Sequence record: NC_049850.1
DNA: 64,000 nt
Direction: 5' to 3' (one strand)
A program made the translations under genes and the position numbers. Of the stretch, positions 13,949 through 62,287 are shown in pieces (position 1 is the first letter of the stretch; every line of letters begins with the position of its first letter). The notes below the pieces were generated by a model that had not been told where the DNA came from, did not search any database, and worked only from the letters and a program-made list of their open reading frames with translations.

Positions 13949-14764
13949 ATGTCGGATCAGGTGAATGGTGAGTTGGGGGTTGGTGAGTTGGGTGATGAAC
14001 GCAGTGAATCACTCAAGGGCGAGTTGGGGGCTGGTTGTGGTCTTTATGACTTTTTCGTCGCATTCAGCAACTGGCTGGAGCGCGGCGAGTCCCAGCAATC
14101 TCTCGAACACGGCCTCGGATTCTCGCGCTATTATGGCCTGTGTTCCAATCTCAACAAGTGGCTGCTTGATCGGGACCATCGACTTTTCGGGACCGACCAA
14201 CACGGTCAACCGAGGGGCTGCTTATGGTACGCACGCGTCGACGAGTTTCAACGGGCACTCCAAGCGCTGTTTGCTGATCGCGGGCTGGATCGTGCGACAC
14301 CGTTTGATGCTGACGAACTGGCGTACGAGCGCGCGGCGCAAGACCATACTCTATACGTCAATCAGGGACGCCTCTCGTTCATCCGCGAAGCATGTGCCGG
14401 ACGCACGCTGACCACCAGCCAGATCGAGCGTGCTGTCGACGCGTTCTACATCGATATCGACAAGGCGGCTCCCCGGATCACGCGGCACACCAAGCGTGAG
14501 TTGTTCGAGCCCGTGTACGGCCTGTGCCAGAATTTCGTGTTCTGGCAGCGTGCGCAAGGCGTTGAGCGATCACGCGTGCGCACGTTCCTGAACCGGGAGC
14601 TTACTCGTGAGTTCACGGCCGCTGGTATGGATTCTCTGTACCCGTTCAACGCGGGCCGCGCAGAAAAGTACAACGCGGAAGAAAACACGTTCCTGAACCC
14701 GCGACGCCGCAAGTGGATTCGTGATCGCGCGGCCGTCGCCCTCGTACGTATGGGGGTCAAGTGA
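13949..14764 (+). CDS. protein with two internal repeats (GLCxN...PF...N..R family)
   Basis: GGGAGG SD; repeats YGLCSNL...TPFDA...NQGRLSFIR and YGLCQNF...YPFNA...NPRRRKWIR. Confidence 0.8.
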   Translation: MSDQVNGELGVGELGDERSESLKGELGAGCGLYDFFVAFSNWLERGESQQSLEHGLGFSRYYGLCSNLNKWLLDRDHRLFGTDQHGQPRGCLWYARVDEFQRALQALFADRGLDRATPFDADELAYERAAQDHTLYVNQGRLSFIREACAGRTLTTSQIERAVDAFYIDIDKAAPRITRHTKRELFEPVYGLCQNFVFWQRAQGVERSRVRTFLNRELTREFTAAGMDSLYPFNAGRAEKYNAEENTFLNPRRRKWIRDRAAVALVRMGVK

Positions 14765-20202: not shown

Positions 20203-20376
20203 ATGAAGTACTTCTGGATTGCGGTTGTCGCGTTTCTAGTCTGCGACGCCTACCTGTACACCGAGAACGGTGAGTCGTATTTCTGGGGCAACCAACACCG
20301 TATCGAACGCCTTTTCAAACACGTGGCTCTCAGCCTCGGCACCTACCACGCTCAGGAGGATCAAGAAGATGAATAA
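20203..20376 (+). CDS. small secreted/membrane protein (57 aa, not in ORF track)
   Basis: GGGAGG SD; MKYFWIAVVAFLVCDAYLY... Confidence 0.65.
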   Translation: MKYFWIAVVAFLVCDAYLYTENGESYFWGNQHRIERLFKHVALSLGTYHAQEDQEDE

Positions 20377-21403
20377 ATACGCAGCGGAGTTCTTCGGCAA
20401 GTTTCACTACGCGGTCACGGTCGGCTACGACAGGGCCGATGGTGGCCCGTTCCAGTTCAACGATGGCATTTGCGAGAACTTCAGCGTGTACCTGCGTCGC
20501 GTTGGCGTCCCGGGCATCATCAAGGATGCGTATATGCGCGCCCTCAAGGACGCCTTCCAGTTCAACGGACAGGACCGCGTGTTCCCGTTCAATCCGGGAC
20601 GCATGGCCGAGTACAGTGAGGAAGTGCTCACGAACAAGGTCTACAAGAACGAGGAACGTCTTGCGTTCCTGCGCAACATGGTCAACGACTACGATCTGGT
20701 CGAACATCGCGTGGTTCCCAACCTGCTTGATCATTACTTCCGCGAACTGGACACGTGGCTGGACGTTAGCGCCGAAGGGCAGCGTCGGTTCCGAAACTAC
20801 ACCGGCATCTGCACGAACGTCGAGCACTGGCTCCAGTCCCATGGCGTGGACGATTTCGCACTCACCTGTAACATGCGAAACCAGTTGACCCAAGAGTTCC
20901 AGATCGCGCTGAGCGCTCGTGACGAAGGTGTGTACGATGGCTACCCGTTCAACGCCAACGTCGGCCACTACCTGAAGGAAGCTCAGGCGTGCACGATCTA
21001 CGACAACGCAGAGCGCGTAGCCTACATCCGTCGCCGGGCTGCACGTGCCTATCTGAACACGAGCACCATCGACGCGTTCCTGACGGAATTCCGTCAGTGG
21101 TTCACGAACGGGCGCGCTGCCGACAACACGTTCTCGTCTGCGGCTGCTGTCTGTTCGAACCTGACGCGGTGGATGCGGAGCACCGGAGCCGACGACTTCG
21201 CGTGCACGTGGGCACAGAAGAACCTCATGGAAAAATTCGTGCGCATGGGGCTTCACGCGCGATTCCCGTTCAACGAGCGCGCGATGGAATACGCAGACGA
21301 GCGTGACGCCGGAACGTTTTACAAAAACCCCAAGCGCTGTGCTTGGATCGAAAAGATGGGAATCATTTCACATGCAGAACTCTGCAAGCAGTTCGGGGAA
21401 TAA
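20369..21403 (+). CDS. protein with three internal repeats, paralog of 13949-14764
   Basis: AGGAGG SD; repeats GICENF...FPFNP...NEERLAFLR, GICTNV...YPFNA...NAERVAYIR, AVCSNL...FPFNE...NPKRCAWIE. Confidence 0.85.
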   Translation: MNKYAAEFFGKFHYAVTVGYDRADGGPFQFNDGICENFSVYLRRVGVPGIIKDAYMRALKDAFQFNGQDRVFPFNPGRMAEYSEEVLTNKVYKNEERLAFLRNMVNDYDLVEHRVVPNLLDHYFRELDTWLDVSAEGQRRFRNYTGICTNVEHWLQSHGVDDFALTCNMRNQLTQEFQIALSARDEGVYDGYPFNANVGHYLKEAQACTIYDNAERVAYIRRRAARAYLNTSTIDAFLTEFRQWFTNGRAADNTFSSAAAVCSNLTRWMRSTGADDFACTWAQKNLMEKFVRMGLHARFPFNERAMEYADERDAGTFYKNPKRCAWIEKMGIISHAELCKQFGE

Positions 21404-21535: not shown

Positions 21536-21569
21536 TTGACGTAACGTCGGGGGCACTATACAGTGCCCC
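21536..21569 (+). promoter_or_regulatory. sigma70-like promoter with -10 region in a hairpin
   Basis: TTGACG-N17-TACAGT; GGGGCAC-TATACA-GTGCCCC. Confidence 0.8.
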
Positions 21570-21594: not shown

Positions 21595-21801
21595 ATGAAC
21601 AACGTAGCGTCCCGCATTCTCGGCATCCTGAGCACCGAACTCGATCTCGAACCCGAGCACCTGAGCGTCGACCATTCGTTCCATTTTTCGGAATTCGAAA
21701 CCGCATTGGACGACGAGTTCGATCTTCTGTCTGGTGCCGTCGTCTACGAATTCATGTCCGTGCGTGACATGGCATCGCGCATCGAGCGAGTTCTGGCGTG
21801 A
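21595..21801 (+). CDS. ACP-like small protein lacking the phosphopantetheine Ser loop
   Basis: VASRILGILSTELDLEPEHLSVDHSF...FETALDDEFD...SVRDMASRIER aligns by eye with AcpP helices; no DSL motif. Confidence 0.6.
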   Translation: MNNVASRILGILSTELDLEPEHLSVDHSFHFSEFETALDDEFDLLSGAVVYEFMSVRDMASRIERVLA

Positions 21802-22166
21802 CGCATTTCACCCTTCACCAACGCGAAATCGTTGAGCGTGTATTGTCCCGACTGGAACAGGCGGCAGAGGACCCGGTGGACGGTGCTCATCAGTACCTGT
21901 GCTTGCACATAGGCAGCATCGGGCGCATGCTCAGCCACTCCAAAACACGCTATTTCTTCCACAACCTGTTCGGGCGCGACACCCCGTACACGAAGGCGGC
22001 GCAAGCCCTGATCGAGCAGATCGCACAAGCACTCGATGGCAAGCGCGGCAACACGCTTCAGGGCTGGGTCAGCGTGCGTACCGGCTACATTCCGAACGCC
22101 GATGTCATGAACGCGGCTCGTGATGCGTGGCTTCATCGCGCACTCGAAATCGGGTATTTCGGATGA
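21798..22166 (+). CDS. member of the C...W...RxxW paralog family (family F1)
   Basis: YLCLHI, TLQGWV, ARDAWL. Confidence 0.8.
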   Translation: MTHFTLHQREIVERVLSRLEQAAEDPVDGAHQYLCLHIGSIGRMLSHSKTRYFFHNLFGRDTPYTKAAQALIEQIAQALDGKRGNTLQGWVSVRTGYIPNADVMNAARDAWLHRALEIGYFG

Positions 22167-22567
22167 ATTCGTTGCTCAAAATGCTAAAGCGCGTATTTAC
22201 GCGCGGTGCCGCTGTCAATGGGGTTGACACGCGGCTGAGTCCGAAACAGATGGAGATCATGGTGCTGGTATGCGCCGAGATCAATTATCGCAACCCCGAG
22301 CACCAGCAGTTTATCTGTAGCGCGGTAACGCGCGCTGCCGAAGACCTAGATGCCTGTACGTGGTTCGGGCTGTCTCGTAGCTACCGACGCGCCGCAATCG
22401 GCATCCAGTTCCTGATAGACAGGGCCCTCAACAGCGGTGCACTCGGTCGTTGGATTTTCTATGACATGGGCGCACGTGCTATCGACTCCAAGAACGTGAC
22501 CGCCGCCGTCAACCAGTGTCGGGCCGGTTGGCTCGAAACCATAATCGCGCGAGGACGCATCGAATGA
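22163..22567 (+). CDS. family F1 member
   Basis: FICSAV, ALGRWI, CRAGWLETIIARGRI. Confidence 0.8.
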   Translation: MNSLLKMLKRVFTRGAAVNGVDTRLSPKQMEIMVLVCAEINYRNPEHQQFICSAVTRAAEDLDACTWFGLSRSYRRAAIGIQFLIDRALNSGALGRWIFYDMGARAIDSKNVTAAVNQCRAGWLETIIARGRIE

Positions 22568-22779
22568 AGAAATATGTGGGAATTGCACTGATCTTGGGAC
22601 TGATGCTTGCCGCGCTTGCGGCTGTCGCAAACCCGACCTCAGTAGTGATCGAAACGCGGTTCGGCTACATCCGCATCTACGACGTGTTGACCCCGGCAGG
22701 TCACCAGTGTACGATTGCGTCCTCTGAAGCTGACTCCAACAGTGCGGGTCGCGCATTGGCCATGCAGTGCTACAAATAA
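22564..22779 (+). CDS. small secreted protein
   Basis: Signal-peptide-like MKKYVGIALILGLMLAALAA. Confidence 0.7.
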   Translation: MKKYVGIALILGLMLAALAAVANPTSVVIETRFGYIRIYDVLTPAGHQCTIASSEADSNSAGRALAMQCYK

Positions 22780-22787
22780 GGAGAATC

Positions 22788-23039
22788 ATGAAGAAGCTCG
22801 TTCTGGCGGTGGCGCTCGTCGCTGCCCTCACTGGGTGCACGCGCCCGGATCAAGCACGTCGGCTGCTGACCCAACAGGGCTACACGCAGATCGAAATCAC
22901 GGGCTACGCACCGTTCGCGTGCTCGAAAGACGACACGTTCCACACGGAGTTCCGTGCTGTATCGGCAGCAGGCCATCAGGTACAAGGCGTTGTCTGTTCA
23001 GCCTTGCTCAAAGGCGCAACTATTCGGCTGGAGGATTAA
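22788..23039 (+). CDS. lipoprotein
   Basis: AAGGAG SD; MKKLVLAVALVAALTGC lipobox. Confidence 0.8.
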   Translation: MKKLVLAVALVAALTGCTRPDQARRLLTQQGYTQIEITGYAPFACSKDDTFHTEFRAVSAAGHQVQGVVCSALLKGATIRLED

Positions 23040-23423
23040 ATGCGTGCAACTCATGCAAAGCTTGAAGTCACGGGAGACCGCAGCGCCCTTATCACGGCCG
23101 ACATCCTAGCGCGCTTTATCGGCAGCGAAATTACGTATCTCGCGGACTTGGTGGACGACACGCAACCCCTGCGAGTCGTAAACCTGCGCTTCCGTGGTGA
23201 TCTCGCAGACCTGCACGGTGAAAAGATCATGCTGCCGTTCGCGGATGCAGTTCGCGGCGGCAAGGCTCTCGGGCTGCTCATCAAGCGCATCAACTGCGCG
23301 ACGGCGCAAGTGGGCTATGCAGCACACAGTTTGGTTGATCAGTATGATGGTGCAACCGTGGACACCGATGCGGAAACCGGGAAGATCGTGGTGACCGTAC
23401 GACTTCAAAGGAGCCGAGCATGA
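23040..23423 (+). CDS. hypothetical protein
   Basis: GGAGG SD. Confidence 0.75.
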   Translation: MRATHAKLEVTGDRSALITADILARFIGSEITYLADLVDDTQPLRVVNLRFRGDLADLHGEKIMLPFADAVRGGKALGLLIKRINCATAQVGYAAHSLVDQYDGATVDTDAETGKIVVTVRLQRSRA

Positions 23424-23953
23424 CGCCACGACAACGCGAAAACGCGCGGCTCGCAATCGATCAGGGCAATCGCTACCCGCCCGACAGCCTGCAAACCGCT
23501 CACTGGACGCTGGACGCGGCTCGCGGTATCATCCACGATCTGAGCGACCGTGGCTCGTTCGATGACGCGCTGGACAAGTGCGATCAGGCGGTTCTCGACG
23601 AAATCACGGTCGCGATCCAGAACATCATCCGGGTCGCGCACGCCTCTGTTAGCGAGCACGCGGATCAGCCGCCCTCAGCCACCGATGCGGCCATCGCGCT
23701 GGCGCATGAAGCCCAGTCGGCCGTCACCTCGATCTACGCTACGCATTTCGGTATCGGTGACGTGCAGTGGCATGAGGACATCGAGCGCGAAACTGGGCTG
23801 GACGAGCACGACCGTCAGGAATTGCAGGAGGCACTGGAACAGCGTTTCAGCGCCGTGTTCGACGAGCGCGAATTCGAGGCGTGCCGCACGGCCAGCGCTC
23901 TCGTCGCCTTTATCGTCAAGAACCTGTTGCCGTTCGAGGTCGACCGTGGATGA
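23420..23953 (+). CDS. two-domain protein with C-terminal ACP-like domain (no Ser)
   Basis: ...IERETGLDEHDRQELQEALEQRFSAVFDEREFEACRTASALVAFI; Glu where AcpP has GADSLD. Confidence 0.65.
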   Translation: MTPRQRENARLAIDQGNRYPPDSLQTAHWTLDAARGIIHDLSDRGSFDDALDKCDQAVLDEITVAIQNIIRVAHASVSEHADQPPSATDAAIALAHEAQSAVTSIYATHFGIGDVQWHEDIERETGLDEHDRQELQEALEQRFSAVFDEREFEACRTASALVAFIVKNLLPFEVDRG

Positions 23954-24146
23954 TGTGGACGATTTCATGGACGACGGAGAACCCGTGGATCGCGATCAGG
24001 CACTCGACATCCTGAACACGGCTAGTGTGTACCTCAGCCGCTACGAGAGTGAGGCTCGGGGTTCGCACGCGGACGACGTTTGGATCGCAAACGGAAATCT
24101 GAAGCGGCTTATTTCGCAGTTGACAGCAGAGTGGTCGGCAGAGTAA
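23946..24146 (+). CDS. hypothetical protein
   Basis: GTG start; MDDVDDFMDDGEPVDRDQAL... Confidence 0.6.
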   Translation: MDDVDDFMDDGEPVDRDQALDILNTASVYLSRYESEARGSHADDVWIANGNLKRLISQLTAEWSAE

Positions 24147-24149
24147 ACT
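24120..24149 (+). promoter_or_regulatory. sigma70-like promoter
   Basis: TTGACA-N18-TAAACT. Confidence 0.6.
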
Positions 24150-24177
24150 GTCTTCTCTACAGTAAAGGAGGGGTCGC

Positions 24178-24465
24178 ATGAAGTGGTATCACCCGAATCA
24201 TGTAACACCGGATCGTGACCATTGCCCGTATTATGAGGACGACTACTCGGTCCCCGTGATCGTGACGATGCGTCTCGAAGACGGTGATCTGGTGGTTGCG
24301 TCCACGCAGTGGATGTACTCGTACCGCGAACAGGGCTGGGTCGAGTGTGGGCTGGAGGACGGCCCGTCGCCTGCCGACTATTCGGATTACGGTGTGGTAG
24401 TGGCTTGGGCATACCCTCCTGAGCCGTGTGGGCCCAATGACTATGCGGAGGTAACGGATGTTTAA
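24178..24465 (+). CDS. hypothetical protein (DUF551-like pattern)
   Basis: AAGGAGG SD; MKW...P N-terminus and VVAWAYPPEP C-terminus. Confidence 0.7.
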   Translation: MKWYHPNHVTPDRDHCPYYEDDYSVPVIVTMRLEDGDLVVASTQWMYSYREQGWVECGLEDGPSPADYSDYGVVVAWAYPPEPCGPNDYAEVTDV

Positions 24466-24844
24466 CGAAGACGAATACGGTGAGATCACCGACGATCTGT
24501 ACGCACAGCGCACGATCTACGTGGCAAAGTATCACGACGGCCAATACCCGGAAGACGACGAGATTTTCGGGGCGTTCGGCACGCGCGAGGAAGCGGAGGC
24601 CGCCAACGAGGAAGAGCGTTCGAATTACACGGGCCGCTACTCACAGGGCTACCATCGCGCCAACGAACGGTATTACGGAGTAGACGCCGTGACGATGGAA
24701 ACCCGTATCTCGGTCGACGACCTGCACCTGCTGCGTGCGCTGGAGGCCGGTGAATGCGACGAGGACGAGCAGAATGCAGTGTTCCGCAGGGTAGCGCGCC
24801 TGCTGGGCCTGAGTGACGAAGACACCGACGCGGAGGACAAATGA
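24458..24844 (+). CDS. hypothetical acidic protein
   Basis: GGAGG SD. Confidence 0.75.
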   Translation: MFNEDEYGEITDDLYAQRTIYVAKYHDGQYPEDDEIFGAFGTREEAEAANEEERSNYTGRYSQGYHRANERYYGVDAVTMETRISVDDLHLLRALEAGECDEDEQNAVFRRVARLLGLSDEDTDAEDK

Positions 24845-24981
24845 TCAACCTGACGCAACACGAGAAAAACCTGATCGCGCGTCTGCGTGACTGCCGTCAG
24901 GAACTGAGCCCGGCTGACCGTCACGGCCTGCTGGACCTGATCGACGAACTTCTGGAGGCAGACGAACATGGCCCGGAGTAA
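24841..24981 (+). CDS. small hypothetical protein (46 aa, not in ORF track)
   Basis: GGAGG SD; MINLTQHEKNLIARLRD... Confidence 0.6.
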   Translation: MINLTQHEKNLIARLRDCRQELSPADRHGLLDLIDELLEADEHGPE

Positions 24982-25297
24982 GAATTTGGTGGAAGCGTAC
25001 GAGAAGCTGACTCGCGAAGACGTGTACGACATGATCAACGGGTCGAAGGAAGGCCCGCAAGCCAGCCTCACCAACGCTGAGGTCCAGAGTTTTCTGGAAC
25101 AGGTTCGCGACCTCGCGTCCAAGCAGTTCGGGATCACGCTCGTCACCGACTACAACGGCCAGTACGGTGATGCAGGTGCCACGTACATGACGCTGCGCAC
25201 CAACGACGCTGAAGCCACGTTCAAACTGATGAACGTCACGGACAACAGGGCCGAACAGAACCTGCGCGATATCGAGAACTGCTGGCGCGGCAAGTAA
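24968..25297 (+). CDS. hypothetical protein
   Basis: GGAGG SD. Confidence 0.75.
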   Translation: MARSKNLVEAYEKLTREDVYDMINGSKEGPQASLTNAEVQSFLEQVRDLASKQFGITLVTDYNGQYGDAGATYMTLRTNDAEATFKLMNVTDNRAEQNLRDIENCWRGK

Positions 25298-25304
25298 AAA
25301 GCAG

Positions 25305-25340
25305 TTGACGCGACACAAAACGGACCCTATACTGGGTCCG
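25305..25340 (+). promoter_or_regulatory. sigma70-like promoter with -10 box exactly in a hairpin loop
   Basis: TTGACG-N17-TATACT; CGGACCC-TATACT-GGGTCCG. Confidence 0.85.
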
Positions 25341-25372
25341 TTGTCATTTCTAGACCCAGAAAGGAGATTTCG

Positions 25373-25828
25373 ATGGATATTCAGGTTGTCGCTGCCGCAA
25401 TTTTCGGGTTTTTGGCCGGTGCCCTGCTCATGTTCCTGATTTTCGAGAACGTGCTGCTCAAGAAAGCGGTTGCGCAGACCGAAAAGCCGAAGTATGATGG
25501 CGGTCAGTACACAAACAGCGCGAAACCGAACAAGAATCGGGCCGATCCGGAGTGGCAATTCAGTGAATCGAAGTACATGAAGGCCAATTTTGGCCCCGAC
25601 ATCGATCCTGACCTGCATCCGTTCGGTGAACCTGAGCAAAATTCGGGTGAAACGACGACGGTCACGAGTTCCGGGTACACGGTGAACGGAAAACCCGCGA
25701 CTCCGGAGCAGGAAAAGGTGATCAAGGAGGCCATGGGGCTGGCGGACACCGCATTCGAGACCGCGAGCACGAGTTTCAGCCAGATGAGCGACGCGTTCAA
25801 GGCGCTTAGCAAGATCAAACCTCAGTAA
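25373..25828 (+). CDS. membrane-anchored hypothetical protein
   Basis: AAGGAG SD; single N-terminal TM segment. Confidence 0.8.
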   Translation: MDIQVVAAAIFGFLAGALLMFLIFENVLLKKAVAQTEKPKYDGGQYTNSAKPNKNRADPEWQFSESKYMKANFGPDIDPDLHPFGEPEQNSGETTTVTSSGYTVNGKPATPEQEKVIKEAMGLADTAFETASTSFSQMSDAFKALSKIKPQ

Positions 25829-25841
25829 AAGGGAGAAAACG

Positions 25842-26357
25842 ATGCTTAACCACAATGACGCCAACGTGGCATGGGCCGAATACATGGCAATCCGGGCTGA
25901 CGGGAGCCGTGATCTGAGCGAGCGCGATGCGTTTGTCGTATTCCTCGAAGGTTTTGCGAAGCGCGTGGCCCATGCCGCCCGTGCCGAGTCCTATACGGAC
26001 CGCCAGCACATGGAATACGTGGCGCACGCACTCGGGTTCGATGCCGAAGACGTACTGGATGACAACGACGGTGATGGCCCGTACATCCATACGCGCAGCC
26101 GCACTCTCGAACCCCTCGTTCGCACCGAACACGCGATGCTCGTGGCGCTCCAACTGGTGCTCAAGGTCGAGCAGTGCGAGATCGCTGGTGCCAGACGCGA
26201 AATCAAGGTCACGGAAGTGGACGGCCCGACCACGGGAGCCGCAACGTACACGGCAATCGTCGAGCATCCGGCATCGGAGCACGATATGCAGATCGCACTG
26301 AATCGTGCAATCGTCATGTGCGCCTCGATCATGGGCCAGCGCGAGGACCTGTTCTGA
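25842..26357 (+). CDS. hypothetical protein
   Basis: GGGAG SD. Confidence 0.75.
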   Translation: MLNHNDANVAWAEYMAIRADGSRDLSERDAFVVFLEGFAKRVAHAARAESYTDRQHMEYVAHALGFDAEDVLDDNDGDGPYIHTRSRTLEPLVRTEHAMLVALQLVLKVEQCEIAGARREIKVTEVDGPTTGAATYTAIVEHPASEHDMQIALNRAIVMCASIMGQREDLF

Positions 26358-26521
26358 TGGCCCCGATTACCATAGAAACATTCGGTCTGCTCTGGTTCGT
26401 GGCCGGTATCTGTGCCACGCTAATCATTCAGGGCATATGGCGTGTTCTGAATCCGCCTGAAGACAAGGTGCAGGACGTGGACAAACGCCGACGCCAACAA
26501 CGGGAGTACGACCATGAGTGA
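26357..26521 (+). CDS. small membrane protein
   Basis: TGATG overlap; one TM segment. Confidence 0.65.
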   Translation: MAPITIETFGLLWFVAGICATLIIQGIWRVLNPPEDKVQDVDKRRRQQREYDHE

Positions 26522-26741
26522 ACTCTGGGAAAATCCCTTGTTCTCGCTCGAAGAACGTCTGGAGATCGCGGCCGGTGCCGTGCAATTCCACAAGCGCATC
26601 ATTGCCCAGTTGCGTGCGAAGTGTGCGGAGGCCGCTGTGAAACTGGACGAGGTTTCGCGCAACGCCGACTCGTGGCACTGCGACTGCAACGCCATCGACG
26701 ACGTGGCTGACCGGCTGCGCGAACTGGGTGACGCACGATGA
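26514..26741 (+). CDS. hypothetical coiled-coil protein
   Basis: GGGAG SD. Confidence 0.7.
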   Translation: MSELWENPLFSLEERLEIAAGAVQFHKRIIAQLRAKCAEAAVKLDEVSRNADSWHCDCNAIDDVADRLRELGDAR

Positions 26742-26959
26742 CGTTGCCCGACTCGTTTTACAGGAAGCAGCACGACTCGATCCAGCGCTCGTTGGCCCGG
26801 CTATCCGAAAAGCTGAAGTTGTTGCGCGACGCGTGCCCGCACCTGAACGTGCAGAAGAAGGCGCGCTCGGACACCGGTAACTGGAGCCGTAGCGACGACC
26901 GCTACTGGTATGACTGCACGTGCCCCGCGTGTGGCAAGCACTGGACGGAGGACCAATGA
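26738..26959 (+). CDS. small protein with possible zinc ribbon
   Basis: CPH...CTCPACG; ATGA overlap. Confidence 0.7.
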   Translation: MTLPDSFYRKQHDSIQRSLARLSEKLKLLRDACPHLNVQKKARSDTGNWSRSDDRYWYDCTCPACGKHWTEDQ

Positions 26960-27360
26960 ACGTGAACGACGCGTTGAAAGAAGTGATGCACGAGATACAG
27001 CACATGCCGGTCGAAGAGTTGCGTGCTCTCCACGAAGCCTCCAAGAACGGCCCGTGGGCCGAGGTGTTCCGTGCACTCTATCGTGATGCTGTCGACATCG
27101 AAGCCCCGGAAGAAAGTGCGGTTCCGAGCATGGCGTGCGTTGGTCGCAAAATCAAGGGTGAAGTTGTTTGGTACACGCGACCGAAACGTGGCTACCTGTA
27201 TCAAGTGGCCGATCCGTGCTTCAAGATCGAGGGCCCGACGTTCGAGGACTGGGCACGTGATCATGGCTACGAACTCAGCACAGATGTTGAAGGTGACTAC
27301 GAAAGTCAGAGGACGCGCGCCGCATTCGAAGGTTGGAAAGCTGCTAAAGCTGGAGGCTAA
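26956..27360 (+). CDS. hypothetical protein with C-terminal FExW...A(F/W)xxW module
   Basis: GGAGG SD; FEDWARDHGY...RAAFEGWKAAK. Confidence 0.75.
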   Translation: MNVNDALKEVMHEIQHMPVEELRALHEASKNGPWAEVFRALYRDAVDIEAPEESAVPSMACVGRKIKGEVVWYTRPKRGYLYQVADPCFKIEGPTFEDWARDHGYELSTDVEGDYESQRTRAAFEGWKAAKAGG

Positions 27361-27588
27361 ATGACAAAAGATACGCTGAATATGCTCATCATGGACCTGC
27401 AAGAAGAAGGTTCGGAGTTGAGCGAACGCGCAGCCGTCTCCATCCACAAACTCCGACGCGATCTCGGGTTCGCGCGGGGCCGGTTGCGTGCGATCACTGC
27501 GCAGAACGAACGGCTGGAAGAAAGCGCAAGCCTGCACACGTGGCGAGAGTCCGAAGAACAGCGGGCACAACGTGGAGCAATGATGTGA
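27361..27588 (+). CDS. hypothetical coiled-coil protein
   Basis: GGAGG SD. Confidence 0.7.
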   Translation: MTKDTLNMLIMDLQEEGSELSERAAVSIHKLRRDLGFARGRLRAITAQNERLEESASLHTWRESEEQRAQRGAMM

Positions 27589-27956
27589 TGGATCGTGAAG
27601 AATTAAAGGTACTGGCGCTCGAAATGGGTGTCGGTGAAATGGTCACCCGCAAAAAGACTGGTAAGGACTGGTTCTTTGCCTCGGAAATGACGGGCAACGA
27701 ATTGCTGGCCTACGGTGAAGCCGTCCTAGCGCGGGCGGGTAAGCCTCCGCGCCTCGATCTGCATGCGTCGTTCGAGCAGTGGTGGACGCACGGCATGAAG
27801 GATGGAGAGGAACGTGCCGATGTAATGCGACAGATGCGTGTAACTTGGGACAAGTTTGGCACGTACGAACCGTATCGGAAAGACTGCCAAGATTCGTTCA
27901 CGTCGTTTGCGGCTTGCTACGCACTTATCTACACAGGAGAATTTGGTTATGCCTGA
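27588..27956 (+). CDS. hypothetical protein with FEQWW module
   Basis: TGATG overlap. Confidence 0.7.
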   Translation: MDREELKVLALEMGVGEMVTRKKTGKDWFFASEMTGNELLAYGEAVLARAGKPPRLDLHASFEQWWTHGMKDGEERADVMRQMRVTWDKFGTYEPYRKDCQDSFTSFAACYALIYTGEFGYA

Positions 27957-28173
27957 AATCATCAGCGCCGGTCAACTGCCGGGAAACAAACGCTACGAAG
28001 CCACGTGCTCGAACTGCCGTACGCGTTTCTCGTTCCTGCAAAAGGAAGCACAGCACGGCTACGACCGCAACGACAGCTACCTGTCGATTAGGTGCCCGCT
28101 CGCTGGGTGTGGACACATGGTGAACGTGTCGACCAGCACCAGCGCGGGTAGCTCTTGGTATGCGGATCGCTAA
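27949..28173 (+). CDS. small zinc-ribbon protein
   Basis: AGGAG SD; CSNC...CPLAGC. Confidence 0.75.
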   Translation: MPEIISAGQLPGNKRYEATCSNCRTRFSFLQKEAQHGYDRNDSYLSIRCPLAGCGHMVNVSTSTSAGSSWYADR

Positions 28174-28463
28174 TGGCCATCATCGACACGATGCCTGCGA
28201 CCCATCTGGAGTTCGCGAAGGACCCGAACGAGACGCGGCCCGAAGTCCTGTGGGCCGAGATCGAGCGTCTGCACGCTATGGCCTACCACTCGAACGGCAC
28301 CCTGTGGCAGGAACTCGCAATCGAGGAAAAGATGAAGCGCATCAAGATGGAGGCCGGTGTCATGGCCAACATCCGGGACTTGCTTTGTTCGGTGACCGGG
28401 GTTAAACTGGATACCCTTACGATTCAACGTATCCTCAAAACCGCACAGGGAGAGCAAGCATGA
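28173..28463 (+). CDS. hypothetical protein
   Basis: TAATG overlap. Confidence 0.7.
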   Translation: MAIIDTMPATHLEFAKDPNETRPEVLWAEIERLHAMAYHSNGTLWQELAIEEKMKRIKMEAGVMANIRDLLCSVTGVKLDTLTIQRILKTAQGEQA

Positions 28464-28864
28464 AGACGAAAGAGATTCTGAATCTACTGCTGGAGATCAA
28501 TCGGGCTGTGGCACGGGCCCCCGACAAACCTCTGGGCTTGGGCACCGTCGAAACTTTGGGTCGTGCCATCGAGGCGCTGAGCAAGAAGCAGAAGCGTAAG
28601 TTCGAGCGGCATGTCAACGACTGGTTCACGCGTGAGGTTGCCCGCATGTCGGCTACCAAAGCGCATCGCATCGACGGCTGGGAGACGCTGGAAGAGTACG
28701 GTTTCGAGGTGCATGGTGGGACGGACGATGCCCCCGTCAACGACTACCAAGAACTGCAACACGCAATCGAGCGTGAGACCGGCGTAAAGATTCCGCTGTT
28801 CGTGCTCTACCACACGACCATCGAGGGCATCATCCAGTACATCATTCACGGAGGCGCACAATGA
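28460..28864 (+). CDS. protein with C-terminal ACP-like domain (no Ser)
   Basis: ...ETLEEYGFE...DYQELQHAIERETGVKIPLFVLYHTTIEGIIQYII resembles AcpP helices II-IV. Confidence 0.55.
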   Translation: MKTKEILNLLLEINRAVARAPDKPLGLGTVETLGRAIEALSKKQKRKFERHVNDWFTREVARMSATKAHRIDGWETLEEYGFEVHGGTDDAPVNDYQELQHAIERETGVKIPLFVLYHTTIEGIIQYIIHGGAQ

Positions 28865-29064
28865 AGCGAGTTGCAATCGACTATCTGGTTCTGGGCGAGC
28901 ACGGGCAATCCTTGTCGGAGTTCGAACGCGTGGTGCTCAAGCACCTGCTGCGTGGCTACGAACTCGTCGGCGGCCCGTGGCACGATCCACAGCGCGGGTG
29001 CATGCGACAGGCCGTGGTGGAGTATCAGGACAGCGAACCCGCAACCCAACACGTACAGGACTGA
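28861..29064 (+). CDS. DUF1737-like small protein
   Basis: LLRGYELVGGP...MRQAVV pattern. Confidence 0.6.
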   Translation: MKRVAIDYLVLGEHGQSLSEFERVVLKHLLRGYELVGGPWHDPQRGCMRQAVVEYQDSEPATQHVQD

Positions 29065-29069
29065 CGAAC

Positions 29070-29303
29070 ATGGCAGAATTTTGCGATCTGTGTGCCGAAG
29101 ACATGGGATTCCCCCATTCGGATTTCGAGGGCATCGGTGAAGTGACCGACGCTGACGGTAGCCCGTGGTACTACACGGTGCTGTGTGAAGGCTGCGGCCC
29201 GATTCAGGTGACGGGCGACGGCCGCAACGTGAGCCGCGAGTTCGACCGTCAGGAGGCGCTGCGTAACAGCGCGGGAGCCGGTGATGCCCCGCAAGCACGA
29301 TAG
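29070..29303 (+). CDS. small zinc-binding protein
   Basis: FCDLC...LCEGCG. Confidence 0.7.
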   Translation: MAEFCDLCAEDMGFPHSDFEGIGEVTDADGSPWYYTVLCEGCGPIQVTGDGRNVSREFDRQEALRNSAGAGDAPQAR

Positions 29304-29562
29304 CGACTGGACTGCGATCTACTGGGGCTCGGACCCTGCGCGGCCGGGCCGTCTGTACCCGACAGTCAGAATCGTGCTCGGCTACTGCGATGGTGAAGAG
29401 TACGGATTCAGCCACGGGCTCCCCACCAACGTATTCTTCGACGACGAGGATGCGGCAATTCGGTGGGCACAGCGTGTGGACGCATACATCGAAGAGGCGA
29501 TGCGCGGCTTCATGGAAGAGGCTGCGGATCGTATGTTCAGGAAGGAGAAAGACAGTGATTGA
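29281..29562 (+). CDS. hypothetical protein
   Basis: GGGAG SD. Confidence 0.65.
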   Translation: MMPRKHDSDWTAIYWGSDPARPGRLYPTVRIVLGYCDGEEYGFSHGLPTNVFFDDEDAAIRWAQRVDAYIEEAMRGFMEEAADRMFRKEKDSD

Positions 29563-29842
29563 CCATATGGCAAACGCGTTCTTCGTGTACACGGCGCTCG
29601 CGTTCACGGGAATCGGGGCAGCGGTCGGGGTGCTGGCGCACGCCCACCATCGACGCAAGCGCGATCTCCGAACCACCTACGAGTTCAGCCAGTTCTGCGA
29701 GTGGGCGGCCAAGAGGGGCTACGATCTGACGCTCACCTCCCATGTGTGGGATGTGGATAGCGCCGGAGACTCGCGGTACGTGTTCCAGTCGTTCACGACG
29801 AAAGCAGCATGGGATGCGTGGCTCGGGAGCGTCTTTCGATGA
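29555..29842 (+). CDS. membrane-anchored protein with FCEW...AAWDAW module
   Basis: AAGGAG SD, GTG start; N-terminal TM segment. Confidence 0.7.
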   Translation: MIDHMANAFFVYTALAFTGIGAAVGVLAHAHHRRKRDLRTTYEFSQFCEWAAKRGYDLTLTSHVWDVDSAGDSRYVFQSFTTKAAWDAWLGSVFR

Positions 29843-30066
29843 AAGCCATCGATTATCTGAAAAGCCTGCACGAAGTGTGCGCTTTCCAATCCACGGAACG
29901 CCGTGGCACCGGCCCAGCCTCCAACTCGGAACTGGGCCGTTGGCTTAAAAGCGGTGCGCTCCACGTGAACGGAAAAGCCTACGGTCCCATGGACAAGATC
30001 GAATTCCCGATCACGTCAGTCGTCCTGTTCCCAAAATCGAAGCGCAGTCGTTCGACCCTGCTGTAG
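29839..30066 (+). CDS. S4-like RNA-binding domain protein
   Basis: SNSELGRWLKSGALHVNGK matches the S4 alpha-L motif (SRSxARxLIxxGxVxVNG). Confidence 0.65.
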   Translation: MKAIDYLKSLHEVCAFQSTERRGTGPASNSELGRWLKSGALHVNGKAYGPMDKIEFPITSVVLFPKSKRSRSTLL

Positions 30067-30074
30067 GAGATTCA

Positions 30075-30335
30075 ATGTTTGGCATTCTGAAGAAGATTTT
30101 CGGGGACCCCGAAGACCCGACCGTGTGCGCTATGGCCTACGCGCGTGGCCGAAGCTATGCACTAGGCGAGTTCCTTAAAGTGGACTACAACGATGATGCC
30201 GAGCTTGGTCCCGTGGTAGACCGCCTGCAAGCTGAGTGCTGTGGCAGTTTCAACACAACGGGCAAAGAGCACGCGTTCGACCGTGGCATTCAGGCTGTGC
30301 TCGACGAGTACTACACCGAGCAGGGTATGCCTTGA
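30075..30335 (+). CDS. hypothetical protein
   Basis: AGGAG SD. Confidence 0.75.
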   Translation: MFGILKKIFGDPEDPTVCAMAYARGRSYALGEFLKVDYNDDAELGPVVDRLQAECCGSFNTTGKEHAFDRGIQAVLDEYYTEQGMP

Positions 30336-47947: not shown

Positions 47948-48265
47948 TTACGCGGTTTTGAGAAGTTTTTCACGGATACGTTGAGCGAACGCGTGTTGGA
48001 TCACCTGTGCCTTGCTCATTTCGAGGCTGGTATCCCCGATTTCCGCGTCCATCAGACGAAGGATACGGAGAATGACACGGTGCTCCAGTTCACGTGTGGT
48101 CGCGATGTCGGGCTGGACCTCGGCCACGCTTAGCAGCCACTGGGCGAACGCGTACACCTCGTCATCGTCGGCCACGATCTTGAACTGGGAATACGCCATG
48201 TTCGAAAGCAGGTTAGCCGTATCGTAGCTGTCGACGCCCCGGATTTTCACCTCATTCGTCAGCAT
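47948..48265 (-). CDS. hypothetical protein
   Basis: MLTNEVKIRG... Confidence 0.7.
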   Translation of the reverse strand: MLTNEVKIRGVDSYDTANLLSNMAYSQFKIVADDDEVYAFAQWLLSVAEVQPDIATTRELEHRVILRILRLMDAEIGDTSLEMSKAQVIQHAFAQRIREKLLKTA

Positions 48266-51672: not shown

Positions 51673-52001
51673 CAATCTCCCTTCCCGAATTCCTTGTTTA
51701 CCATATGGGCCCACAGGTCAGCCTCTATCTTGGACCTGAATGTCAGCATCCCATTTTCACCGCTGGGCCACCAGTCGCGTGTATACGCGTCGTTCTTGAA
51801 CACGGTCAGGCGCTCTACACACCACACCTTCGCGTTCAGTGGATGCGGTGCCGGGCACCACGGCCCGCGCATCAGCACCTCGTGCTCCACATCCTGCGTG
51901 GACCCGAAATCTACCAGCCCATTTTTCCACACGCAAGTACCGCACCCACCGTTCTTGGCACGATACTCACATGTTTTATCCTCTATGCAAAACTGAGCCA
52001 T
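51672..52001 (-). CDS. Cys-rich hypothetical protein
   Basis: FC...CEY...GCGTC...WCP; TAATG overlap. Confidence 0.7.
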   Translation of the reverse strand: MAQFCIEDKTCEYRAKNGGCGTCVWKNGLVDFGSTQDVEHEVLMRGPWCPAPHPLNAKVWCVERLTVFKNDAYTRDWWPSGENGMLTFRSKIEADLWAHMVNKEFGKGD

Positions 52002-53854
52002 TACGTGGCCTGTTGTGCATCCAGCACGCTATTTACCATGTCCTGCGGCGTTACCCAGTTGGCGACTGCCGCCAGCGGAATGTCGATGCCGAACTCGGAA
52101 TTCAGTTCATCCCACGCCATTTCCATGTCCATGCTGTCCCAGCCGTAATTATCACACAGGCATGAATCGAGTCCGACGCCAGCAGCAGCCGAATCCACGG
52201 TGGCTACGGCCTTCAGCACGCGCTGAGTCAGCAGCTTCGCGGTATCGACCTTCGCGGCAGTCGCCTGCGCCTGCTCCTTGGCACGCAGCAGCTTCACCAC
52301 CGTCTTCACCACGTCCGCCACCGTAGTCCAATCCTCTGCGTCCTTCAGCGGGATGTTGAGGCCGAACCGACGATCCAACGAGTACGCGAGGTTCATGCGC
52401 GAGTGGTGGTAGAAATTGCAATCGCACTGGAGGTGATCCGTGTACGACAGGCTTTCACCGCCGCTCTCGTTACGCATGATGTAGCCACGAATGTGATCGA
52501 ACGCCTGTTGCGCATCCGAAACTGCCACCTTATCAGCGTACTGCGATGCGACTTCAGAAGCGACCTGTACGGCAAAGCGATTCAGCGCGATCTGTCGCAG
52601 CACGTCGGCCACCACATCCGACACCAGTTCCCAGTCCTGCGTCGTGTGATCGAGCTTGATCGAGAACGCGTCGTTCAGGCGTTGCACCAGTTGCTCGTCG
52701 TACTGACCCGGGTACAGGTGATCCAGATTCGAGAGGATACCGATGGAGGGCGCGCGTTCCAGCATTACCTTCGACGCGTACTCTTCAGCCACGGCTTTGA
52801 TGTGCTCCGCGACCTTCCAGAAAACGGCTTCCGACAATTCGGCCGGGCTCAGTCCGTCAAACGGCATGCAGGTGCGTGCAATCTCGATCAGATCGCGGTC
52901 GATATTCAGCGCCCGTTGCACGTTCTGTTCCGCTGCGTCCAAGACAAAGCCGTCCTCTTCATCATCCTCGTCTTCGTCTACAACGTCATCTGCGTCACGC
53001 GGCAGATCGTCGTCACCGTCCGGGTCACCCTTGTCGTCGATGCTGTCGTTCTCGCGCAGACGGCCTTCGCACGCGTCAATGATGTAGGCCACGATGTCGT
53101 GGATCGTGCACCAACTCGTGTACTCGACTTCCGGAGCCAGAGCCGCGTAATGGTCGGCAATCGAATGGCTCATCGTCTGCATGTTCACGTCCGTGAATCC
53201 GAATTTGCTGCGGATGTGCGTGCTGCTCGACAATTCATCGTTGCGATCCACACAATCGAACGTGGAAACCATGCCAATCACGAACCACAGGGTCGGCAGG
53301 TAGTTGGCGTCGCGGGCCGTATGCGTATTGTTGAGTGCACCCTCGTACACGCCATTGCAGCCTTCGAGGATACCGAGCACCGCGTCGTTCACCGTGACCC
53401 AGCGATCCGGGTGCGCGCCGAGATCAGCGTAGCTGCTACGCAGGCTGTTGCGCAGGCGGCAGCGGTCTTCCTCGCCCATTTCGAGATCGAACGCGAGGTA
53501 GTCGGTCGGCATCACTTCCGGGTCCGTCATGTCGTGCTCCATGATCGAGCGGATGATGACTTTCACGACCTCCAGCACGTTGTGGTGGTTCGGATGCGTG
53601 ATCTGCGGAGGCGCTTTCGAGGGCGACGGGCGCACAGGCGTCGGCTTGGCCGGAGTGTCCAGCATGATCGTGAACTTCTCTTGGTAGCCACCCACGGTTT
53701 CGAGAACGCCCAGCTTCCGGCCCATGAATTCGAGGCCGCTGACCGTGGGCTTTTCCTTGATCTCGTTGAAGAACGATTCTTCGCACTTGCCCCAGTCCGT
53801 CCAGTTGCCGTTGTTGAGGCCACGAACGCGGTATTGGTAAACGATGTCAGCCAT
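52001..53854 (-). CDS. 617-aa protein with five tandem ACP-like domains; only the last has the GxDS motif
   Basis: Last domain GWDSMDMEMAWDELNSEFGIDIPLAAVANWVTPQDMV matches AcpP (GADSLD...[23 protein letters not shown]); four upstream repeats end in W-x-(T/L)-(V/I)-x-D-(A/V/I)-V. Confidence 0.85.
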   Translation of the reverse strand: MADIVYQYRVRGLNNGNWTDWGKCEESFFNEIKEKPTVSGLEFMGRKLGVLETVGGYQEKFTIMLDTPAKPTPVRPSPSKAPPQITHPNHHNVLEVVKVIIRSIMEHDMTDPEVMPTDYLAFDLEMGEEDRCRLRNSLRSSYADLGAHPDRWVTVNDAVLGILEGCNGVYEGALNNTHTARDANYLPTLWFVIGMVSTFDCVDRNDELSSSTHIRSKFGFTDVNMQTMSHSIADHYAALAPEVEYTSWCTIHDIVAYIIDACEGRLRENDSIDDKGDPDGDDDLPRDADDVVDEDEDDEEDGFVLDAAEQNVQRALNIDRDLIEIARTCMPFDGLSPAELSEAVFWKVAEHIKAVAEEYASKVMLERAPSIGILSNLDHLYPGQYDEQLVQRLNDAFSIKLDHTTQDWELVSDVVADVLRQIALNRFAVQVASEVASQYADKVAVSDAQQAFDHIRGYIMRNESGGESLSYTDHLQCDCNFYHHSRMNLAYSLDRRFGLNIPLKDAEDWTTVADVVKTVVKLLRAKEQAQATAAKVDTAKLLTQRVLKAVATVDSAAAGVGLDSCLCDNYGWDSMDMEMAWDELNSEFGIDIPLAAVANWVTPQDMVNSVLDAQQAT

Positions 53855-61612: not shown

Positions 61613-61875
61613 TAGCCTCGTCCCCGCGCACGTTGTTGTCGGATTGCACGTGCCTCTTTCTTGTTGGGCACATGCTCTCGGGTCGCCAACTCGGCCTTCA
61701 ACTGGGCCAGCGTGATGTAGCGCAGGCCGCCGTCAAACGGGTCGTAATACAGTTCCTCGTCCGGAATGTCGTAGCGGTTGTGGCCGGTACAGCGATAGAC
61801 GCCGACGCGCATCTTCATCAGAACACGCGTATGCTGCGTCTTCAGCCAAGCCACCGGGTCCCAGTTAGGCCACAT
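61612..61875 (-). CDS. conserved phage hypothetical protein
   Basis: GGGAGG SD; C-terminal REHVPNKKEARAIRQQRA. Confidence 0.75.
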   Translation of the reverse strand: MWPNWDPVAWLKTQHTRVLMKMRVGVYRCTGHNRYDIPDEELYYDPFDGGLRYITLAQLKAELATREHVPNKKEARAIRQQRARGRG

Positions 61876-62287
61876 GGTGATCCTCCCATTCGATGTAGCC
61901 GCGCTGGATCATGGTATGCACCCACCCCAGACGGCATTGGTTGGAGTGCCGGTCGAGGCGTCGGCACAATTCTCGGTGCGCCTCGCGGTCAACGATGCAC
62001 CCGTTCTCGTTACGCCCTGCCGTGGGCTTTCCGAACTGGTGATAGACCCACGAGCACATGGTATGGCCTCTACCATGAGCGTCGACGAGAGAGCCCTCGA
62101 TCATGTCCACCAACTCGATAGCCGCCTGATTCCGATACTCGCAGTCGGAGCGGCGCGCGATGTCCTCGACCGTGAGGCACAGATATTCGTCGCCATGATC
62201 AACGACACCGGATTCCTCCAGTTTGTGAGCCACGAGTTCCAGAATCTGCATCTGGTCTTCGTTCAAGTAGCGTCGCTGCATCACCAT
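61865..62287 (-). CDS. family F1 member
   Basis: YLCLTV, TMCSWV, CRLGWVHTMIQRGYI. Confidence 0.82.
   Translation of the reverse strand: MVMQRRYLNEDQMQILELVAHKLEESGVVDHGDEYLCLTVEDIARRSDCEYRNQAAIELVDMIEGSLVDAHGRGHTMCSWVYHQFGKPTAGRNENGCIVDREAHRELCRRLDRHSNQCRLGWVHTMIQRGYIEWEDHHVA

Follow-up and report, generated by a model that had tools for sequence, protein, structure and literature searches.

The 64-kb window analysed here, which is identical to bases 199736–263735 of MK552140.1 and forms the last 64 kb of the genome of Burkholderia phage BcepSaruman, encodes small proteins that resemble the acyl carrier protein (ACP) of bacteria, some of which lack the serine to which phosphopantetheine is attached. 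BcepSaruman is a 263.7-kb jumbo myovirus of the genus Sarumanvirus with B. cenocepacia as host, and its sister phage BcepSauron was the comparison for all selection counts. The Sarumanvirus lineage appears to hold an unusual number of carrier-protein-like domains, in gp119, gp347, gp363 and gp422 and perhaps in gp341, and at least three of the ACP-like proteins of BcepSaruman have another residue in place of the attachment serine (Glu in gp347, Val in gp363 and Asp in gp119). The data seem to fit best with a lineage-specific expansion of degenerate carrier-protein domains. Our tentative reading, to which we give somewhat less than an even chance, is that gp347, gp363 and, less surely, gp341 form with gp119 and gp422 a diverged carrier-fold set specific to Sarumanvirus, retained as binding modules that act as decoys or adaptors. 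A preliminary description of the window had placed three dispersed, serine-less ACP-like genes at coordinates that coincide exactly with the annotated coding sequences (CDSs) BcepSaruman_341, _347 and _363 (Table 1); the ACP-like fold it gave to all three is solid for gp347 and probable for gp363, but weak for gp341.

For gp347, three libraries agree that the C-terminal half is ACP-like, as had been proposed. Residues 107–165 match the Pfam family PP-binding (PF00550) with E = 1.4e-3 and 19.3 bits, slightly under its curated cut-off of 20.8 bits, residues 98–169 match PHROG 5934 'acyl carrier protein' with E = 1.2e-4, and the mitochondrial ACP chain 9iho_T is matched in the PDB with E = 5.8e-4, its D-S-L aligned with D-E-H of the phage protein. 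In every alignment, Glu129 (23804–23806) occupies the position of the phosphopantetheine-attachment serine. The BcepSauron orthologue (P0002, 273 aa) reaches 30.4 bits against PP-binding over two stretches, above the cut-off. These matches indicate that the C-terminus of gp347 is a genuine ACP/PP-binding-like domain. The N-terminal region has no family match in Pfam and no paralogue within the BcepSaruman genome.

The serine-less domain of gp347 is under strong purifying selection. Codons 54–173, which include it, differ from BcepSauron by nine synonymous changes and one non-synonymous change (ratio of non-synonymous to synonymous rates, omega, ~0.03, and ~0.07 for the C-terminal domain itself), and codons 1–53 differ by four synonymous and 14 non-synonymous changes (omega ~1.07), so that the amino-acid changes are clustered in the N-terminal part (Fisher p = 2e-7). 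The orthologue in BcepSauron, Sauron_350, contains an extra in-frame segment of 288 nt (96 codons; L003:5210-5506), which corresponds to about position 23940 of the window and codes for a further ACP-like domain (E = 0.0042 against Pfam PP-binding), whose serine, S221, is kept in N-S-A-D. BcepSaruman is cleanly without this segment, with the overlapping start of the next gene intact and the serine-less domain kept; BcepSaruman can dispense with the serine-bearing module that the gp347 orthologue has.

The C-terminal domain of gp363 is probably ACP-like as well. Its top and only relevant Pfam match is PP-binding, with E = 0.017 when the full-length protein is scanned and 0.0075 with residues 55–134 alone. 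The match covers only model positions 36–67, i.e. helices II–IV, at 15.8–16.9 bits, which is under the cut-off; PHROG 5934 is not matched, and in NCBIfam none of gp341, gp347 and gp363 matched an ACP family. We also built a mixed profile from 71 distinct proteobacterial AcpP sequences and five confirmed phage domains, leaving out gp341 and gp363, and scanned with it all 3,758 six-frame open reading frames (ORFs) of BcepSaruman together with their reversed decoys. Among the ORFs not used in training, gp363 scored best, at 8.5 bits against 4.2 for the best reversed decoy. Relatives of these proteins came from BcepSaruman and BcepSauron alone, so there was no alignment depth and the AlphaFold2 (AF2) models of gp341 and gp363 were limited to single-sequence prediction. 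The gp363 model is of low confidence (predicted local distance difference test, pLDDT, 47.7), and its helices 93–107, 113–118 and 121–130 match helices II, III and IV of AcpP, which span 36–50, 56–61 and 65–75, with a constant offset of ~57. Val93 (28736–28738) occupies the position of the attachment serine. In a Foldseek search against the PDB, the best match of this model was non-significant (E = 0.63), and chains of ACPs and peptidyl carrier proteins made up the majority of the top 50. The serine-less, ACP-like character proposed for the C-terminal half is supported for helices II–IV; the rest of the domain is unmatched. Residues 1–54 gave no family match in Pfam, NCBIfam or PHROG, and matches of gp363 to NDUFS3 and CheY (PDB and NCBIfam, E = 0.03–1) were dismissed as chance. 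The gene lies in a block (26514–30335) in which the two phages are 100% identical, and is for this reason uninformative on selection.

Two further genes complete the set. The most AcpP-like of all is gp119 (AcpP hidden Markov model (HMM) p = 1.6e-7; hhalign P = 1e-5), which has Asp37 at the attachment position, D-D-L standing for D-S-L, and which appears to be a fifth ACP-like gene and the third that is clearly serine-less. The other, gp422, had been described as a protein of five ACP-like domains. In domain 5 (residues 536–617), a canonical PP-binding domain by Pfam (E = 2.7e-7), Ser574 stands within G-W-D-S-M-D. Domain 4, also ACP-like, has His where the serine would be, and gp422 matches phrog_5934 with E = 4e-5. 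Domains 4 and 5 are thus supported by profiles, but domains 1–3 have no Pfam match and hhalign P-values of 0.26–0.68, and are without statistical support as ACPs. The earlier tally of eight ACP-like domains, seven of them unmodifiable, is not verifiable because only domains 4 and 5 of gp422 are supported, and it was overstated also in that gp341 has a serine, Ser28, in register. Codons 1–528 of gp422 differ from BcepSauron at five nucleotides (three synonymous, two non-synonymous). Codons 529–590 (window 52085–52270, minus strand) are saturated, with proportions of synonymous and non-synonymous differences (pS and pN) of 0.67 and 0.34, compared to a pS of 0.008 in the rest of the gene. These codons encode helix I and loop I of the sole canonical PP-binding domain, and the attachment serine is present in both phages (GWDSMD in BcepSaruman, GWGSVD in BcepSauron). 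This stretch is a recombination patch, and the serine-bearing domain is a mosaic. Another ORF with a carrier-like motif is gp413 (window 47948–48265, minus strand), whose N-terminal G-V-D-S-Y-D-T resembles the ACP motif G-A-D-S-L-D-T. It scores 6.7 bits with the mixed profile, above all decoys, has no room upstream for helix I and no Pfam support, and its motif may be a coincidence or a truncated remnant.

The evidence on gp341 is more divided. It is a real gene, with a GGAGG ribosome-binding site and with five synonymous and no non-synonymous changes relative to its BcepSauron counterpart. The whole protein had been said to show the ACP pattern without the attachment serine; the first statement is weakly supported and the second is not established. 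In hhalign against an alignment of the 71 AcpP sequences, 63 of the 68 residues of gp341 align collinearly (P = 0.0068), with nine residues of loop I deleted, and the protein ranks first of 930 window ORFs, just above gp347. With the AcpP HMM it is fourth of the 3,758 genome ORFs, after gp422, gp119 and gp347, at a score marginally above noise. Helix 4–15 of its AF2 model (pLDDT 63.9) coincides with helix I of AcpP. These results would make gp341 a weak candidate for a degenerate carrier-protein fold with a loop I shorter by ~9 residues. Its Ser28 (21676–21678), part of the motif D-H-S-F, precedes the Phe of D-D-E-F by 14 residues, a spacing equal to that between Ser36 and Phe50 of AcpP, and the mixed profile aligns it with the attachment serine; the motif H-S is typical of peptidyl carrier proteins. 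Because Ser28 is in register, 'serine-less' is not established for gp341. It is nearly an even question whether the protein is related to ACP at all, or is instead a small acidic helical protein whose likeness to helix II (…ALDDEF…) comes from chance and composition. For the latter speak the lack of any ACP/PP-binding match in Pfam, NCBIfam and PHROG and of any match at all in the PDB, a Foldseek search of the model that returned nothing, an AcpP-HMM score of 3.9–4.7 bits that is barely over noise and the best decoy (4.2), and the loop I deletion that every alignment requires. Composition-preserving shuffles of gp341 reached its hhalign score in three of 280 cases, and the shuffle p values against AcpP are just 0.01–0.02. 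The only library matches are weak and unrelated (Pfam GRIP, E = 0.19; phrog_30298, E = 0.34). The ranks beside confirmed domains, the collinear alignment and the coincident first helix argue against a chance likeness, however, and the presence of at least four other ACP-like proteins in BcepSaruman raises the prior.

The proteins are confined to their genus and have drifted far from one another. A 5.8-billion-protein index, tblastn against 50,697 phage genomes and IMG/VR held no relatives of gp341, gp347 or gp363 outside BcepSauron, and a full HMMER scan of 1.84 billion representative proteins gave none of gp422 beyond the two phages; gp341, gp347 and gp363 are orphans confined to Sarumanvirus. 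Pairwise phmmer among the BcepSaruman ACP-like domains produced no matches, and an HMM search that was iterated from gp422 domain 5 picked up domain 4 alone: the domains are too diverged to connect with one another by sequence. The isoelectric points (pI) of the ACP-like proteins and domains, 4.0–5.0, resemble that of AcpP. The acidic pattern of helix II (equivalents of D38, E41 and E47) and its hydrophobic core (A45/L46 and F50) are largely retained, although several of the acidic residues are replaced in gp347 and gp341.

The absence of the attachment serine would leave gp347 and gp363, with Glu and Val at this position, unable to carry acyl groups, and gp119 would likewise be unloadable. 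No phosphopantetheinyl transferase (PPTase), fatty acid synthase (FAS), polyketide synthase (PKS), lipid-synthesis or acyltransferase gene is annotated in the 263.7-kb genome, and queries with E. coli AcpS and EntD found no match in BcepSaruman. A non-carrier role is favoured by the loss of the serine, the purifying selection on gp347, the gain and loss of modules and the lack of partner enzymes, and the earlier view of mimicry rather than metabolism is in this respect reasonable. By our tentative reading, the domains of gp347 and gp363 would persist as small, acidic modules for protein binding. Host-type promoters would drive them, and their conserved acidic 'recognition' helix II would be the surface with which they dock on the usual host partners of AcpP. 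The docked domains would then act as decoys or adaptors, to which the variable N-terminal parts might add specificity or effector function. The use of ACP as a targeting module, which had also been suggested, is likewise hypothetical. Protein binding through the acidic helix II is, by analogy, plausible as the most economical mechanism. As related in the part of PMC3896788 that cites Keating et al. (1995), unmodified apo-ACP inhibits the growth of E. coli by blocking glycerol-3-phosphate acyltransferase.

Several points weigh against binding decoys or adaptors. Docking on AcpP clients is not assured, because several acidic residues of helix II are replaced: E48 and E49 of AcpP are Q and R in gp347, and gp341 has His for both D35 and D38. 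In gp341 a possible attachment serine, Ser28, is retained, and the protein has no ACP match in Pfam, NCBIfam and PHROG and no match whatever in PADLOC and the PDB. The gp363 match is restricted to the second half of the domain, and the two models are of low confidence (pLDDT 63.9 and 47.7), with no significant ACP match in Foldseek. Since the ACP-like genes are all orphans, they offer no co-variation or context evidence, and no homologue in the library searches links them to a host target; no connection with a partner, with toxicity or with defence came to light. Finally, the serine-bearing domain 5 of gp422 and the extra domain of Sauron_350 hint at genuine carrier chemistry.

If this hint is followed, the set would be a real carrier system, in which the serine-bearing domains are modified by a host PPTase and carry acyl or aminoacyl groups for a phage-specific modification, and the serine-less ones serve as scaffolding pseudo-carriers. 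Inactive ACPs do occur as structural or scaffolding pseudo-carriers in tandem arrays, and serine-less and serine-bearing domains stand in tandem within the same phage proteins. In-register serines are found in gp341 (S28), gp422 (S574, with G-W-G-S-V-D in BcepSauron) and Sauron_350 (S221), and genes for a signal-peptide protein and a lipoprotein, gp344 and gp345, lie in the putative operon of gp341 and gp347. Jumbo phages with duplicated ACPs beside lipoprotein genes have also been reported (PMC13573597, PMC7760394). We nevertheless consider such a system rather improbable, as BcepSaruman yielded no gene for acyl transfer, a ligase, a synthase or a PPTase, gp347, gp363 and gp119 have no serine-bearing domain in this phage, and it is the serine-bearing module of the gp347 orthologue that is dispensable there and the serine-less one that is conserved. 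The fold may instead have been re-used for an unrelated inhibitor, i.e. a nucleic-acid mimic, an anti-restriction or anti-defence protein or an immunity-like nuclease blocker, with ACP ancestry incidental and no host ACP clients. The strong acidity of the proteins would suit this, as would the fast-evolving N-terminus of gp347, which is of the kind expected in an arms race, the mosaic, cassette-like differences between the two phages around the ACP-like genes, and the setting of these genes, downstream of host-type promoters and surrounded by many small orphans; the ACP-like four-helix fold class also includes the colicin immunity proteins. We still regard an inhibitor of this type as unlikely. 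Searches of PADLOC-DB with gp341, gp347, gp363, gp422, gp119 and their neighbours gave no meaningful match, nor did Pfam or PHROG connect the proteins with anti-defence or immunity families; the sole PADLOC match, gp347 against PDC-S14, is weak (E = 0.015, 12.6 bits). Helix II of gp119 and gp347 keeps a pattern specific to AcpP rather than a generic acidic surface, and the part of gp347 that evolves fast is the N-terminus and not the ACP-like domain.

A bolder version of the decoy reading would have Sarumanvirus own a private family of unloadable ACP mimics that dock on host enzymes and regulators served by AcpP and so shut down or redirect host physiology. In some members an acidic residue resembling phosphate would stand in for the serine (gp119 has Asp, gp347 Glu), candidate targets would be enzymes of lipid and lipid-A synthesis, SpoT and acyl-homoserine-lactone synthases, and swappable serine-bearing modules together with fast-evolving N-terminal parts would tune specificity. 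We offer this as a speculation with little probability behind it.

Table 1. Carrier-protein-like genes of BcepSaruman, their regions, and promoter-like sites (window positions unless another record is named).
Feature	Position	Strand	Basis or remark
gp341 (BcepSaruman_341)	21595..21801	+	Annotated CDS, 68 aa, pI 4.3, 'hypothetical protein'
gp347 (BcepSaruman_347)	23420-23953	+	Annotated CDS, 177 aa, 'hypothetical protein'
gp347 N-terminal region, residues 1-95	23420..23704	+	Fold without assignment; family and paralogue searches blank
gp347 C-terminal ACP/PP-binding-like domain, ~residues 96-173	23705..23953	+	Pfam, PHROG and PDB matches
gp363 (BcepSaruman_363)	28460-28864	+	Annotated CDS, 134 aa, 'hypothetical protein'
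gp363 N-terminal basic helical region, residues 1-54, pI 10.1	28460..28621	+	AF2 model, pI
gp363 C-terminal probable ACP-like domain	28622..28864	+	Helices II-IV supported (residues 93-130, 28736-28849)
gp422 (BcepSaruman_422), 617 aa, the 'five-domain protein'	52001..53854	-	Annotated CDS
gp119 (BcepSaruman_119), 83 aa	MK552140.1 69003-69254, outside window	-	Annotated 'acyl carrier protein-like protein'
Sigma70-like promoter: TTGACG, 17-nt spacer, TACAGT	21536..21564	+	Only intergenic gap upstream of gp341
Sigma70-like sites	13858, 19475, 20146, 21536, 24120, 25305, 30332, 33901	+	Motif scan
Sigma70-like sites, n = 10	41560-62347	-	Motif scan

Sites of the form TTGAC[AG]-N16-18-TAnnnT are present at every intergenic gap, the eight on the plus strand all in the plus-strand gene block and the ten on the minus strand all in the minus-strand block. 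One of them precedes gp341, as had been stated; the -10 element of this putative promoter lies within the loop of a GGGGCAC/GTGCCCC hairpin (21550–21569). The -10 hexamer sits in the loop of a perfect 7–9-bp hairpin at sites 19475, 21536 and 25305. The promoter layout predicts one operon from gp341 to gp348 and places gp363 in another that starts at 25373. The ACP-like genes had been called unlinked, which does not apply to gp341 and gp347 because both lie in one putative operon. Early expression of the ACP-like genes is suggested by promoter-like motifs alone.

The neighbours of the ACP-like genes are small orphan genes. In the putative operon of gp341 and gp347, the products of gp344 and gp345 (window 22564–23039, plus strand) are a signal-peptide protein and a lipoprotein (…LTGC…). 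Two F1 paralogues had been said to follow gp341; gp342 and gp343 (window 21798–22567) are not similar to each other (BLASTP E = 3.2), but each weakly matches gp441 (~61865–62287, minus strand) and other genes of the minus arm (E = 0.001–0.04 in a genome-sized search). There is no BcepSauron counterpart of gp343 (22163–22567), and two different genes fill its slot (Sauron L003:3117-3835); this slot, next after gp341 and gp342, is a variable cassette. Elsewhere in the window, gp339 (20369–21403) and gp323 (13949–14764) are clear paralogues (phmmer E = 3.5e-16). The BcepSauron product names 'aminotransferase', 'carbamoyltransferase' and 'peptidase (M16)?' on neighbours and orthologues were set aside; two of the three notes carry question marks, and Pfam gave no support for such names in the two orthologues scanned (gp337 and gp422).

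ACP is a hub protein that contacts dozens of essential bacterial enzymes, and the unmodified form is toxic. Unloadable ACP mimics, if they are what the phage makes, would represent a class of host-takeover decoy not described so far. They would give a virus a simple, previously uncharacterised means to block the host's synthesis of lipids and envelope or its ACP-linked signalling, and they could supply natural tools to probe or inhibit the interfaces between ACP and its clients in Burkholderia. The literature we searched contains no characterised serine-less phage ACP or ACP mimic. Even without a decoy role, the case is one of a virus in which a carrier-protein fold was multiplied, lost its active site and was maintained by selection.

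Compared with AcpP and the family PF00550, the phage domains are alike in length, in the pattern of helices II, III and IV, in acidic pI and in the helix-II core A-L-E-x-x-F, and for gp347 and gp119 the alignment spans the domain in full. They differ in the replacement of Ser by Glu, Val or Asp, in the shortened loop I of gp341, in the fusion of gp347 and gp363 to unrelated N-terminal regions and in the scores of these two, which on their own fall under the Pfam cut-off; the genes also lack an FAS context and are orphans of one phage genus. Like apo-ACP, the serine-less versions would not be loadable. The best sequence matches of gp347 among solved structures are ACP subunits of mitochondrial complex I (9iho_T and 7tgh_AB), which are structural or binding subunits rather than free carriers. 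Those subunits keep the serine, however, and bind through the acyl-phosphopantetheine arm, and the likeness is at the domain level only (E = 5.8e-4). The tandem ACP arrays of polyunsaturated fatty acid and polyketide synthases likewise have several ACP-like modules per polypeptide, as do gp422 and Sauron_350, whereas the phage proteins have no catalytic domains, most of their modules are serine-less, and domains 1–3 of gp422 are unsupported as ACPs. In Erwinia Eneladusvirus and in jumbo phages of Flavobacterium, ACPs have been recorded as genes that are rare and uncharacterised (PMC7760394, PMC13573597). These are annotated as ordinary ACPs, annotation being the basis of the comparison, whereas several Sarumanvirus copies are serine-less, fused to other domains and without relatives outside the genus. 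The two groups have in common that they are jumbo-phage genes without an assigned role, sometimes duplicated and sometimes beside lipoprotein genes, and gp347 and gp422 both match the phage ACP family phrog_5934.

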